A DNA stretch of 64,000 bases, from contig OZ037772.1 of NCBI GenBank assembly GCA_964035545.1, positions 6,494,889 to 6,558,888 on the forward strand. The letters run 5' to 3'. The translations under genes and the position numbers were made by a program. This document shows positions 47,408-62,746 of the stretch, in pieces (within the stretch, counting starts at the first letter, position 1; every line of letters starts with the position of its first letter). The notes under the pieces are model-generated. The model was not told the DNA's origin and did no database searches. It saw nothing but the letters and a program-made list of their open reading frames with translations. The stretch is from Bugula neritina. Taxonomy: Eukaryota > Animalia > Bryozoa.

Positions 47408-50400
47408 TTACAAACGTGCTGTATAGGTAACTAAACTCTGTGGAACAGCCTCTACGTCTGTTACTCCTGAAATTCACAGACAATAAACCTTGAGTCACTA
47501 ATTGCTATATATATATATATATATATATATATATATATATATACATATACATATATATATATATATATATATATATATATATATATATATATATATATAT
47601 ATATATATATATATATATATATATATATATATATATATATAATTATATTAAAATAGCATTATTATGATAATAATTGGTGTTTGATGTAGTTATAAGATGT
47701 AGATAAAACAATTCTTGCCTATAGGAATTATCTTCTCCTTTTGTAAAACCTAATCGAAAACATTATATGTTACGAGTCATAACAACAACTGCTTAGCCTT
47801 GGTACAGCATAACAAGCTGGTCATTATAATATTTAATTGGGCAATTTTAAAATGCTATAAAACGTTTTATTAGTTATAATTTATTATAGCTTACTATTAT
47901 TTTCTCATTGGTAATTGTTTTTTAGACCTACTATTATAAACAATTTTCCCTTAAACCAAACTTAATAAACCAAATCTAAAAGTAACTTCAAATTTCAGAT
48001 TCAAAAGTCACAGAGTCTAAATCAATTTGTCTAAAAGAATAGCTTCTCGTCTATACAGATAAAGTTTTAGTGTTACCTGAAAGTTGCATGGCTAGCTTGA
48101 GTTCATTACGTAGAATGGTAAGGACATTTCTGGCACCTTCCTCCCCCTAGCAAAACATTATAGCTTAAAAAATACTTTAGCATCAGAAAATGCAAATTAC
48201 ATAACTGCATGGTTAAATATGGTAATACAAATTCCACTAAAAAGTGCTGAGCTTATGATATTTCAACTTGAACGATTATATATTGTAAAATCATTGTTTA
48301 AAATCTATAATAAATAATGAAATTATATCCTCAACAGTTTAAATTAAATTTTTGAAGCAAGTTTTTTTATAGCCTGCAGTACTTACAGCTACAGTGAGGC
48401 CGTACACTGGAGGTCTACCAACAAACACAGCTCTTGCCCCTAAGGCTAAGGCTTTTAGTACATCAGTACCAGTTCTGACTCCACCATCTAAATACACTTC
48501 TGCTCTACCATTGACTGCCTTCACTACTTCTGACAGAACTGAAATCTGATAAAGAAAACAATATAAATGTTACAAAGTTGTCTCATAATAAATTTTTTGC
48601 AAATATTTCAGCTTTTAATTCAAAAAGCCCTCATTCAATTCGCTAAAATTGGTGTGTCTACTTGCATCTACCAATTCTACACTAACGCATTTTATATATC
48701 TACAGCTTAATGGGTCAACATCTATAGAAGCATACAAATTGGAAAGGTTTCATTTCATTTAAATTAAAATGTCTGTTTATACTAAGACATATATGCTCTT
48801 TGGTGAACCAAACTGTCCACTTGCTTCTTCAACAATTATATTATCGTATATAACTTTCAGGATATTTAGTATAATAGCAGCAGAGTATTTTAATATTTAC
48901 TGTAGAAGGAACTCCGTCCAACTGTCGCCCACCATGATTTGATACATAGATGGCTTTACATCCTGATTCAAGTGCTTTTACTGCATCAACTCCTATAATA
49001 TATATGCGTATGTATATATATATATATATATATATATATATATATATATATATATATATATATATATATATATATATATATATATATATATATATATATA
49101 TATATATATATATATATAAATATATCTTTACGAGCTAGTAATTTAATTATAAATAAGTATAATAGAAACATTGTTAACTTATTATACTTTATTACTGATA
49201 TTTCAGGCACTACTGTGCCCATCTTCGGAGTAGCAATAAATGGTCAAAATTTAAAAATTATCACGTTACGTTAACCACTATGCATGACACAAAGAATAGA
49301 GAGTGACAGTTATTGTAAATTATTGAAACTAAGGGAGATAATCTTATTTATATTACGAAAGTCAAAAATTATACTGGTTTTTCTTTTGCATAAAAATAAA
49401 TTAGAATTGACAAAAAAAATAGATATCCAAATATAAAAACAGCATGGACTAGTGAAACTATGTGAGAGTTGAGTAGTGTGGAGCTATAACTGCCACTCTT
49501 TATTCTTTGTGTCATGCATAGTGGTTAACGTAACGTGATAATTTTTAAATTTTGACCATTTATTGCTACTCTGAAGATGGGCACAGTAGTGCCTGAAATA
49601 TCAGTAATAAAGTAATAAATCAACAATGTTTTTCATATACTTATTTATATATATATATATATATATATATATATATATATATATATATATATATATATAT
49701 ATATATATATATATATATATATATATATATATATATATATATATGTATATATATATATATATATATATATATATATATATATATATATATATATATATAT
49801 ATATATATATATATATATATATATATATATATATATATATATATATATACATATATACATATTACAATAATATATATTATATAAGTCAATCTCTCACCTG
49901 TCAGAACACCTTTAGCAACAATGGGTAGGTCCGTTATAGTTGTAATCCACTGAATATATTCACAAGTTACAGTAACTTTAAAAATGGTGTTTAAAAAAGC
50001 ATAATCATTGCCTTTTTTATCCAGGAGAGGTGTTTCTAGAGAATCCAGAATTTTAAACCTAAAATTACAGCCAAAAGTAAGTTTTCAAAAATTAAAACCA
50101 AAATAAATCTAAATGATACAAGTGGGGTAATAAAATTCCTAAGCAGAGTGAAATGGAGAGATAATTTTTTAAGTCTTTAAAATGAGTTTTTTAGGTTTTT
50201 TTTCATTTAGAAACAAATAAAGCATTGCTAAACCCCACAATAAAAGCCACAATATTGATATTGACATAATTATTACCAAACACTTTTTTCACATTTATTT
50301 AATTTGAATAGTTTGGCAAATTTTAAGTGATAAAAATGTATTGGAAGCTTTTTGTGCTTTGTTTACATCATGCCTACCAAAATTGCCTATGTTTTATATG

Positions 50401-59786: not shown

Positions 59787-62746
59787 TTACAAACGTGCTG
59801 CATAAGTAACTAAACTCTGTGGAACAGCCTCTACGTCTGTTACTCCTGAAATTCACAGACAATAAACCTTAAGTCACTATAATTGCTATAATATATATAT
59901 ATATATATATATATATATATATATATATATATATATATTTATAATTATATTAAAATAGCATTATTATGATATTAATTGGTGTTTGATGTTGTAAAATGTT
60001 TGATGTTGTTTATATATATATATATATATATATATATATATATATAGTAAAATGAGTGTTTATAAAACGTTACTAGAGTGCTCTATAGAAATAAATCTAG
60101 AGCGTAAACATTAGAAGAAATAAAATGAGATTTGATTAATATAATGGCATTTATTACTAGTAGTTTCGTACACAAGAACGATGTGCACTCGTCAGATAAA
60201 TATTATTTATCTGACGAGTGCACATCGTTCTTGTGTACGAAACTACTAGTAATAAATGCCATTATATTAATCAAATCTCATTTTATTTCTTCTAATATAT
60301 ATATATATATATATATATATATATATATATATATATATAATGTATGCTGATTGTCAATCTAGTTGGAGTTCCAGCAAAGTAAAGTGCTCGATATCACGGG
60401 TGACAGAGCTAATATAATGTAGTGTGTTCAGATTGTTAATGATACATATATATTTTTTTATATTTAAAAAATCTCACACGACTATATAGTTTCGTACAGT
60501 AAACTGCACTCGTCAGGTGTTAGACTGCAATAATTAAAGTTTGATGCTATTAGAGACGGCTTTATAGACTAAACAGGTCAAGCTGTGGGAGTTGTCAGTC
60601 TTTAAAATGCAACTAAATGCTGAATATACTAATATACCGGGCAATTTAACTGTCTAACACCTGACGAGTGCAGTTTACTGTACGAAACTTTATAGTCGTG
60701 TGAGATTTTTTAAATAACAAAAAAAAAATATATATGTATCATTAACAATCTGAACACACTACATTATATATATATATATATATATATATATATATATATA
60801 TATATATATATAATTATATTGAAATAGCATTATTATGATATTAATTGGTGTTTGATGTTGTTATAAGATGTTGGGAAAACAATTCTTGCCTAATAAGAAT
60901 TACCTTCTCCTTTTGTAAAATTTAATCGAAAAAATTATGTTACGAGTCTTAACAACAATTCGTTAGCCTAAACCCTTGGTACAGCATAACAAGCTGGTGA
61001 TTATAATATTTAATTGGGCAATTTTAAAATGTTACTAAATTTTTTTATTAGTTATTTATTATCGCTTACCATTATTGATTATTGATAGTTATTGTTTTGC
61101 TATTATCAACAATTATTCCTATAAACTGGACCTAATAAACTAAATCTGAAAATAACTTGAAATTTTTGATTTCAAAGTATAAATGAATCGAAATCAATTT
61201 GTCTATAGATAAAATTTTAGTGTTACCTGAAAGTTGCATGGCTAGCTTGAGTTCATTACGTAGAATGGTAAGGACATTTCTGGCACCTTCCTCACCCTGG
61301 TAAAACATTATAGTTTAAAAAGTACTTTAGCATCAGAAAATGCAAATTACATAATTGCATGGTTAAATATGGTAATACTGTTTCCACTAAAACGTGCTGA
61401 GCTTATGATATTTCAACTTGAACAATTATATATTGTAAAATCATTGTTTAAAATCTATAAAAAATAATGGAATTATATCCTCAACAGTTTAAATTAAAAT
61501 TTTGAAGCAAGTTTTTTTATAGCCTGCAGTACTTACGGCTACAGTGAGGCCGTACACTGGAGGTCTACCAACAAACACGGCTCTTGCCCCTAAGGCTAAG
61601 GCTTTCAGTACATCAGTACCAGTTCTGATTCCACCATCTAAATATACTTCTGCTCTACCATTGACTGCCTTCACTACTTCTGACAGGACTGAAATCTGAT
61701 AAAGAAAACAATATAAAGTTTACAAAGCTGTCTCATAATGAATTTTTTTCAGATATTTCAGCTTTTAATTAAAAAAACCCTCATTCAATTCACTAAAGTT
61801 GGTGTGCCTATTTGCATCTACCAATTCTACACTAACGCATTTTATATATCTACAGCTTAATGGGTCAACATCTATAGAAGCATACAAATTGGAAAGGTTT
61901 CATTTCATCTAAATTAAAATGTCTGTTTATACCAAAGACATATATGCTCTTTGGTGAACCAAACTGTCCACTTGCTTCTACAACAATTATGTTATCGTGT
62001 ATAACTTTCAGGATATTTAGTATAATAGCACCAGAGTATTTTAATATTTACTGTAGAAGGAACTCCATCCAACTGTCGTCCACCGTGATTTGATACATAG
62101 ATGGCTTTACATCCTGATTCAAGTGCTTTTACTGCATCAACTCCTATAATATATATATATAATAATTGTATCGAGAGATTTTTAAAAAAACAGCGGATAA
62201 AAAAGTGCTCAAATTATTATGTGTATAATAATGAGCAATTATATTATTGAGGAGAAGAGCAATTTAATTATATAGATGTTGTTTTAATGCACTACTAATA
62301 GTTTCATGCCTCCTCGGCACTCCTTGTGCCTGAGGAGTGCCGAAGAGGCATGAAACTATTAGTAGTGCAATAAAACAACATCTATATATAATCAAATTGC
62401 TCTTTTCCTAAATAATATATATATATATATATATATATATATATATATATATATATATATGTTTATAAATATATATATATATATATATATATATATATAT
62501 ATATATATATATATATATATATATATATATATATATATATATATATATATATATATATATATACATAAATAAGTCAATATCTCGCCTGTCAGAACTCCTT
62601 TAGCAACGATCGGTAGGTCCGTTATAGTTGTAATCCACTGAATATATTCACAAGTTAGAGTAACGTCAAAAATGGAGTCTAAAAAAGCATAATCGCTGCT
62701 TTCAGTGTCCAGGACCTGTGTTTCTAGAGAATCCAAAATTTCAAAC
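59787..62746 (-). CDS. HAO: 2-hydroxy-acid oxidase copy d, exons 5-9 (5' part lies right of the window); C-terminal ARL
   Basis: Exons 62746-62586 (GC donor), 62143-62052, 61695-61537, 61296-61227, 59845-59787; nearly identical to copy b. Confidence 0.85.
60149..60201 (-). ncRNA. Minimal type I hammerhead ribozyme (mirror copy)
   Basis: Exact reverse complement of 60205-60257. Confidence 0.85.
60205..60257 (+). ncRNA. Minimal type I hammerhead ribozyme
   Basis: AUUUAU-CUGACGA-GUGCACA(UCGUUCU)UGUGUAC-GAAA-CU(ACU)AGUA^AUAAAU; all core nucleotides and stems I-III present. Confidence 0.87.
60471..60525 (-). ncRNA. Minimal type I hammerhead ribozyme
   Basis: GUCUAACAC-CUGACGA-GUGCAG(UUUA)CUGUAC-GAAA-CUAUAUAGUC^GUGUGAGAU; palindromic stem III ACUAUAUAGU; GUC cleavage triplet. 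Confidence 0.9.
60652..60706 (+). ncRNA. Minimal type I hammerhead ribozyme
   Basis: Same as the minus copy except that stem III reads ACUUUAUAGU. Confidence 0.87.
62162..62418. mobile_element. Fold-back element D in (TA)n of HAO-d intron 5
   Basis: Inverted arms ~62241-62324 and 62333-62418; the plus arm has a full hammerhead, the minus arm is truncated within the CUGA core. Confidence 0.8.
62324..62370 (+). ncRNA. Minimal type I hammerhead ribozyme
   Basis: UUGUGC-CUGAGGA-GUGCC(GAAGA)GGCAU-GAAA-CUAUUAGUA^GUGCAA; stem I includes two G-U pairs. Confidence 0.78.

Follow-up and report, generated by a model that had tools for sequence, protein, structure and literature searches.

Opposed hammerhead pairs in the HAO introns of Bugula neritina and their probable origin as twin insertions of Penelope-like elements

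Why should four short palindromes of different sequence, each carrying a pair of opposed hammerhead ribozyme motifs, sit in the microsatellites of one small cluster of genes? The question arises from a 64-kb stretch of the 216-Mb Bugula neritina assembly (positions 6494889-6558888), which was scanned over its whole length and is referred to here as the window. It holds tandem paralogues of an FMN-dependent dehydrogenase (HAO-type) gene and, associated with their introns, four fold-back elements designated A, B, C and D. Each of these is, in our judgement very probably, a dead-on-arrival twin insertion of a Penelope-like element (PLE), consisting of two 5'-truncated 3' ends placed head to head in a pre-existing (TA)n microsatellite. 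An initial annotation of this DNA had described hairpins lacking an open reading frame (ORF) and carrying two ribozymes, left behind by retroelement families; PLE families do leave such hairpins, but these are not an element type of their own, being ordinary twin 5'-truncated insertions of autonomous elements. The phenomenon belongs to established PLE biology and does not constitute a new system. PLEs have been described as biased towards (TA)n and as leaving inverted, 5'-truncated copies with a tail at one of the ends (PMC8557442). Their pseudo-long terminal repeats (pseudo-LTRs) have been described as carrying minimal hammerheads, in which a base at the 5' end of helix II is unpaired and which also occur as dual motifs, 100-700 bp from one another and on opposite strands (PMC4209133).

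All four fold-backs were recovered where they had first been placed, and they share the single architecture attributed to them: each is bounded by (TA)n and consists of two inverted arms of unequal length. The elements measure 251-530 nt and are non-coding. The inverted arms lie at 49185-49313 and 49486-49614 in A (98% complementary), at 60105-60202 and 60204-60301 in B (98% complementary), at 60442-60525 and 60652-60735 plus 60412-60466 and 60715-60769 in C, and at 62269-62324 and 62333-62388 in D. The features of the four insertions, with their strands, are as follows.

49013-49118: (TA)n microsatellite, left flank of A
49120-49485, minus strand: long copy of A, 366 nt, 3' untranslated region (3'UTR) of a PLE family assigned to the canonical type with a CCHH-type endonuclease (EN), arm and centre contiguous in many genomic copies, where they follow the end of a GIY-YIG ORF
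about 49120-49147, minus strand: tail (extra 3' end) of A
49228-49222, minus strand: hammerhead core of the long copy of A, mutated to CCGAAGA (U4 changed)
49486-49649, plus strand: short inverted copy of A
49559-49612, plus strand: minimal hammerhead of A, CUGAAGA, extra U, 6-bp helix II, helix III AUAU, predicted cut after 49602
49646-49849: (TA)n, right flank of A
60011-60046: (TA)n, left flank of B
60046-60202, minus strand: long copy of B, 157 nt, corresponding to the last 156 nt of a unit assigned to the Hydra clade of PLEs
60046-60109, minus strand: tail of B, 64 nt, with box ACGCTC..GAGCACTCT
60201-60149, minus strand: hammerhead of the long copy of B
60204-60296, plus strand: short copy of B, tail-less, ending TTCTAAT next to (TA)n, 100% identical to the long copy over 93 nt
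60205-60257, plus strand: hammerhead of the short copy of B, predicted cut after 60251
60296-60339: (TA)n separating B and C
60340-60525, minus strand: long copy of C, 186 nt, from a second family assigned to the Hydra type, core start 60516
60340-60411, minus strand: tail of C, with box AGCTCT..GAGCAC
60526-60651: filler at the C junction, 126 nt, outside the C family, with two other copies only in the genome (83-86%)
60652-60769, plus strand: short copy of C, tail-less, core start 60661, predicted cut after 60697
60765-60812: (TA)n, right flank of C
62150-62161: short (TA)n, left flank of D, abutting the 3' splice site of an HAO intron
62162-62324, minus strand: long copy of D, 163 nt, hammerhead truncated 3 nt into the core and without CUG
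62162-62239, minus strand: tail of D, with a GAGCACT box
62325-62419, plus strand: short copy of D, tail-less, beginning exactly at helix I, core start 62330, predicted cut after 62364
62416-62563: (TA)n, right flank of D

Source elements of the arms

The arms proved to be multicopy, with at least 188 to 382 candidates for each long arm (copy counts for all families being lower bounds on candidate copies), and the B copies (at least 260 candidates) are 99-100% identical to one another, which upholds the earlier proposal that several ribozyme-bearing PLE families have been active recently. The B arms of the window match, at 100% identity, the 3'UTR of a unit 2428 nt long, which was taken from a tandem pair on contig C6 (L064:7090-9517) and has an intact 706-aa ORF. 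Some B arms extend upstream by up to 1.6 kb, into the coding sequence. A search of the window by tblastn with this ORF found no match to reverse transcriptase (RT) or EN anywhere in the 64 kb, in agreement with the statement that no RT or GIY-YIG ORF is present there.

The B ORF had 2475 homologues at E<1e-5. Most of them were on contigs of metagenomic origin, some 2.3-2.8 kb long, and the best named ones came from a clam, Solemya velum, and a bryozoan, Watersipora subatra. PLEs are recognised by an RT that resembles telomerase RT most closely and is fused to a GIY-YIG EN, and by partial tandems with strong 5' truncation. Identification of RT and GIY-YIG domains in B-type ORFs draws on predicted structure and on motifs. 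An AlphaFold model of the B ORF built on 20 homologues (predicted local distance difference test, pLDDT, of 84.9) was matched best in Foldseek by the Tribolium telomerase TERT (3du5, E 1.4e-9), followed by the Candida, Tetrahymena and human telomerases and by retron/DRT RTs and L1 and R2 proteins. The last 146 aa modelled alone (pLDDT 86.5) gave a weak result with Foldseek by itself (E 0.3), which was resolved by VIA re-alignment: the predicted C-terminal domain was superposed on the catalytic domain of I-TevI with a Z of 8.7 and a root-mean-square deviation of 2.4 over 89/92 residues, further matches were T4 EndoII (Z 8.0), UvrC (Z about 6) and PD-T4-3, and the top 12 VIA rows contained GIY-YIG nucleases only, the first other row having a Z of 2.7.

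The predicted protein carries the motif marks of the Hydra clade of PLEs, a group of elements under 3 kb that are found almost all in (TA)n and all have canonical hammerheads (PMC8557442). In the putative GIY-YIG domain the residues Y, YxG, R, H, E and N are invariant and no Cys occurs between GIY and YIG (NIVYQ to TYIG); the CxCX5C linker reads CNCRNVKTC, and CQLC..E..N..CRH supplies the CxxC and CxH around conserved E and N. The likeness to this clade extends to the length of the B unit (under 3 kb), its single ORF with a C-terminal GIY-YIG and without CCHH, insertion into (TA)n, canonical hammerheads, aquatic invertebrate hosts, and the DKT and RWK of the consensus of 20 homologues. The B copy itself departs from the clade in reading DKS and RWA, and a homologue of the same layout exists in the bryozoan W. 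subatra, whose phylum lies outside the published host list of Cnidaria, Hemichordata, Mollusca, Echinodermata and Arthropoda (PMC8557442).

For C, compared with (TA)n masked, at least 188 candidates of the long arm were 95-99% identical, and C copies were found directly downstream of an ORF with 45-50% identity to the B ORF (residues 231-703). The D long arm had at least 213 candidates (94-98% identical). D copies occur in tandem with a spacing of 2602-2605 nt, the tandem unit being about 2.6 kb in both C and D, and a D-type hammerhead (87% identical over 85 nt) stands 258 nt downstream of a B-homologous ORF at locus L024. On this basis B and C are assigned to Hydra-clade families, and D probably belongs with them.

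Family A is of another kind. Its long arm had at least 382 candidates, mostly about 80% identical, with one at 92%. The 172-nt centre of the element is itself repeated (at least 243 candidates) and is contiguous with the arm in those copies, so that the left A copy is 366 nt long. A-type 3'UTRs follow the end of an ORF that matches the Pfam family GIY-YIG (PF01541, 24.9 bits against a cut-off of 22.6). The A-type ORF (open frames of 696-811 aa) has the cysteine pair of canonical PLE nucleases of the CCHH type, which places A in a different PLE clade from B, C and D; we therefore assign it, from its predicted protein, to a canonical-clade family. The expected link from longer copies to RT plus GIY-YIG was accordingly recovered through the 706-aa ORF in B, a homologous ORF in C, a GIY-YIG ORF in A and a relative in D. 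Several very young PLE families, from at least two clades, fill (TA)n in this genome, including that in the tandem HAO introns.

Adjoining the B tandem at the same locus is a Ty3/gypsy-type LTR element (L064:408-4277 and 4341-5576, minus strand) with a pol ORF of 1289 aa (RVT_1, RNase H, integrase) and an upstream ORF with an aspartyl protease signal.

Conservation of the hammerheads

A strict type I descriptor (CUGANGA-helix II-GAAA-helix III-UH-helix I, with a minimum of 4 bp in helices I and II and of 2 bp in helix III) matched exactly six sites in the window, all inside the arms (plus strand 49571, 60211, 60661 and 62330; minus strand 60516 and 60195), against a mean of 0.01 in 100 first-order Markov simulations of the window. 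Descriptor and sequence together gave the same inventory of eight arm motifs as had been drawn up before, namely six intact type I cores, one mutated (A minus) and one truncated (D minus), and the four cleavage positions predicted at that stage coincide with those of an independent parse (listed above). A loose match at 24901 fails the full descriptor and was taken as chance.

Helix pairing was assessed in 15 hammerheads from families B, C, D, F, G and H and four elements from other assemblies. Paired cells amounted to 93.3%, compared with 75.7% after shuffling (0 of 500 shuffles reached 93.3%) and 25-52% in a slid-partner control, and double-sided changes were present in 9 of 14 helix pairs. 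A second count, with families A and E added, comprised 18 sequences. The helix covariation is real, as had been claimed from the paired stems of the window elements. At least eight hammerhead families were encountered in the roughly 200 kb of loci surveyed. Five elements overall have a hammerhead downstream of their ORF, at a distance of 60-240 nt in the W. subatra element and three from other assemblies.

Family A, with its unpaired U at the 5' end of helix II, helix III reduced to AUAU and dual motifs on opposite strands, resembles the minimal hammerheads described for PLE pseudo-LTRs (PMC4209133). B, C and D differ from these in having a helix III of 3 bp with a 3-4-nt loop instead of none, and several families of this genome differ in a U.U at 10.1/11.1. 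This mismatch closes an otherwise regular helix II at L048:1255-1311, L039:2273-2329, L061:435-489 and L068:2564-2615.

Are the ribozymes of the hairpins likely to act? The PLE hammerheads published so far are poor cleavers or depend on dimers or on a protein (PMC11167929, PMC4209133). Monomer hammerheads fold with about -11 to -16 kcal/mol and the whole B fold-back hairpin with about -157 kcal/mol; the hairpin is so much more stable than the ribozyme fold that ribozyme action from a read-through transcript is unlikely. In hairpin form the ribozymes are probably inert passengers. RNA-type contigs with spliced HAO exons also contain B, C and D sequence.

The fold-backs at 62268-62389 and 60149-60257 scored 44-55 bits against the Rfam entries mir-3910, MIR6020 and SpF43, all below gathering. 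These were read as generic hairpin scores, far below gathering, and a microRNA or sRNA identity was rejected. For annotation there is a warning in this, since such hairpins score as microRNA precursors in Rfam E-value mode, and Pfam for its part misses the B-type ORF.

Anatomy of the insertions and competing explanations

In about 60 B and C loci that were read, 30 B loci among them, the usual insertion was a twin made of two 5'-truncated copies head to head, one tailed and one tail-less (23 twins in B and about 19 in C, among 60 loci). One arm ended at unit position 2428 and the other at 2364 in the 23 B twins, and the arm ends of C twins fell at 2586 and 2514. All sampled B twins had exactly one tailed and one tail-less arm. 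Two C twins (L036, L046) carried tails on both arms. The tail measures 64 nt in B, 72 nt in C, 78 nt in D and 28 nt in A, and within the window it is found on the long arm only. Arm lengths ranged from about 40 nt to over 1.6 kb, and the centre junctions varied by locus, which indicates separate events and not copies of one hairpin. Most D twins had 15-22 nt between the arms, and in some twins the junction held a filler of 17-126 nt.

Both outer ends of a twin lie in (TA)n. The microsatellite directly follows the 3' end of 50/53 B arms and 46/51 C arms (96/104 sampled); over the window as a whole, (TA) runs at least four units long account for 1.7% of the sequence.

Three features of the ends appear to be fresh. 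Firstly, the B tail can be aligned to the opening 40 nt of its own unit, in the 5'UTR (score 40 versus at most 32 in 500 shuffles), and copies a box that recurs across species: bipartite, with GCTCY followed by GAGCACTCT, it precedes the ATG by about 20 nt in five elements of different assemblies. The short arm stops just before it. Secondly, both kinds of arm end fall in TA-rich patches (TAAT, ATTATAT, AATATA, TTTATA) able to pair with a (TA)n primer. Thirdly, arm 5' ends accumulate within 30 nt upstream of the CUGA box (34/53 in B, 8/51 in C), a pile-up that does not coincide with the ribozyme cut site. We regard these three features as modest new leads. Near-identical copies provide a natural record of PLE integration, a process still poorly understood, and in that record the strict pairing of tailed with tail-less arms in B, the TA-rich ends around the 5'UTR box and the pile-up of 5' ends are the regularities of note.

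How might such twins come about? The anatomy of the window families fits the scheme of PAc, a Poseidon element of Anolis carolinensis, and we infer a mechanism from that anatomy together with in vitro work on the PAc protein, which cuts and extends both strands of an AT-rich target and starts reverse transcription at two internal sites whose interval corresponds to the genomic tail, the hammerhead being dispensable for insertion in vitro (PMC11167929). By analogy, the nuclease of the element would cut both strands in (TA)n, and both DNA ends would prime reverse transcription on element RNA. Synthesis would start at either of two TA-rich patches flanking the conserved box (GCTCY...GAGCACTCT), which, in the transcript of a tandem or pseudo-LTR, would lie in the 5'UTR of the following unit, and the two start sites would yield one arm with a 64-78-nt tail and one without. 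Joining of the two cDNAs at short microhomologies would then leave an inverted repeat, in which the hammerheads would ride along as 3'UTR or pseudo-LTR parts of the source elements. The agreement with PAc has its limits: the PAc start sites lie 111-118 nt inside the ORF and those of the window families flank a 5'UTR box, and the PAc tail is 30-40 nt long compared with 64-78 nt here (28 nt in A). Human L1 offers a further parallel in twin priming, where an inverted 5'-truncated duplicate placed head to head is explained by priming at both ends of the target break. L1 inversions, however, arise from a single RNA that ends in poly(A) and involve a nuclease of the apurinic type, unlike the two defined internal start sites and the GIY-YIG nuclease of the window families.

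Several observations weigh against this account of the elements. The copies sampled were those with the best scores, which may have skewed the shares of twins and of 5' ends. Priming from both strands is borrowed from in vitro data on another clade, and the PAc RT start sites lack the target homology that those of the window families have. The link between D and an ORF runs only via the 87% relative at L024 and the 2.6-kb tandem spacing. Pfam (B ORF plus 20 homologues) and a PDB sequence profile recognise neither RT nor GIY-YIG. The ribozyme scans that had been called for gave a divided outcome, for the descriptor found its six sites but Rfam at gathering score had no match in the whole window; Hammerhead_1 (RF00163) matched two B copies only (28.3 bits versus a gathering score of 34, E 3.7e-4) and did not report the A, C and D hammerheads even at E up to 10. 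A genome-wide RF00163 scan carries no weight either way: of 16234 candidates 73 were scored and 0 passed, and the controls gave no match either. Finally, RNA contigs cross the B hammerhead uncut, although as assembled contigs they cannot show RNA ends.

Among other explanations the one that survives best, though we consider it unlikely, is a snap-back, in which a single cDNA folds at the 5' end of the RNA, copies itself and stops at an internal site before the hairpin is made double-stranded. It would account for B, where the two arms of a twin are nearly always identical (0 differences in 19/23, versus a mean of 0.6 between loci), where a private variant is present in both arms of L028 and where every sampled twin combines a tailed arm with a tail-less one. 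C twins do not follow suit, being no more alike within a twin (means 2.0-2.8) than between loci (1.8-2.7), and in the window element C the short arm is 93% and the long arm 98% identical to the family reference. The fillers at some junctions and the doubly tailed C twins speak for two cDNAs rather than one, as does the extension of both strands by the PAc protein in vitro (PMC11167929).

Could the elements instead be animal non-LTR retrozymes, which are non-autonomous units cut out by a pair of hammerheads and then circularised, and for which a non-autonomous relationship to PLEs has been proposed (PMC7229834; doi 10.64898/2026.07.22.740005)? The ribozyme type is shared, with type I hammerheads of weak or palindromic helix III, and a true tandem 270-nt hammerhead unit with the tail box does exist in the genome. 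Retrozymes, however, are direct tandem repeats giving circular RNAs, whereas the window elements are inverted pairs with the two ribozymes on opposite strands, from which no unit-length RNA could be excised; their sequences are moreover fragments of autonomous elements and not separate short families. We hold this origin to be very improbable for the fold-backs. The tandem unit mentioned above (L040:2140-2870, minus strand) consists of three head-to-tail 270-nt units in a (TA)n array, each with an intact type I hammerhead and an ACGCTC..GAGCACTCT box at its start, as in the B tail; its appearance suggests a non-autonomous partner of Hydra-type PLEs, of the retrozyme type.

Slimmer still are the chances of fold-back or Stowaway-type miniature inverted-repeat DNA transposons that move as whole hairpins into TA sites with incidental hammerheads. 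Such transposons would likewise have inverted arms and TA-rich flanks, be small and occur in many copies, but the variable centre junctions and arm lengths leave no constant unit, the outer ends are asymmetric (tailed versus tail-less), and the arms run collinear with the 3' ends of units coding for RT/EN, to which those of B are identical. That the palindromes are assembly fold-back artefacts can practically be dismissed, for although palindromes beside microsatellites are error-prone in assemblies and no read or contig spanning any window fold-back was listed (the runs being stored as contigs), dozens of twins with different junctions and unique flanks occur on nine large contigs, other B junction variants were present in contigs of an independent run, and the twin architecture recurs in W. 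subatra (L067) and in the literature (PMC8557442).

Twin insertion of truncated PLE copies by way of both target ends accordingly remains our preferred account, and within it a further idea may be entertained, tentatively and with more doubt than confidence. The hammerhead plus the 5'UTR box (GCTCY..GAGCACTCT), about 90-160 nt in all, might form a self-contained minimal retrotransposition template of Hydra-type PLEs, in which the ribozyme would have a structural or boundary role and not only one in RNA processing. If so, the box would be the RT entry site, pairing of the TA-rich patches with the (TA)n primer would explain both the tail and the microsatellite preference, and the 5' boundary would be fixed by the folded hammerhead or by a promoter immediately upstream of it.

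Host genes and adjoining sequence

The three tandem HAO-type paralogues lie on the minus strand at 41222-41997, 48075-48996 and 61225-62147, with an additional diverged HAO exon copy at 58091-58162. Splice joints of HAO were seen in RNA contigs at 61296/61538 and 61695/62052-62062. The A site in one paralogue corresponds to the D site in the next, the third having TA-rich sequence only (41999-42338), and the neighbouring paralogue (47584-47690) has no insertion at the B+C site. Paralogues with empty sites imply that the microsatellites predate the insertions.

The B+C complex is enclosed by 98% identical direct repeats at 59896-59992 and 60765-60861, and the repeated stretch is present once in the neighbouring paralogue, at 47584-47690. 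The repeats represent either a long target duplication or a local duplication.

At 62144-62161, (TA)n and D both start close to the end of an HAO intron, within about 5-16 nt of its 3' splice site. On its other side, the HAO exon beside D is still joined normally in RNA contigs.

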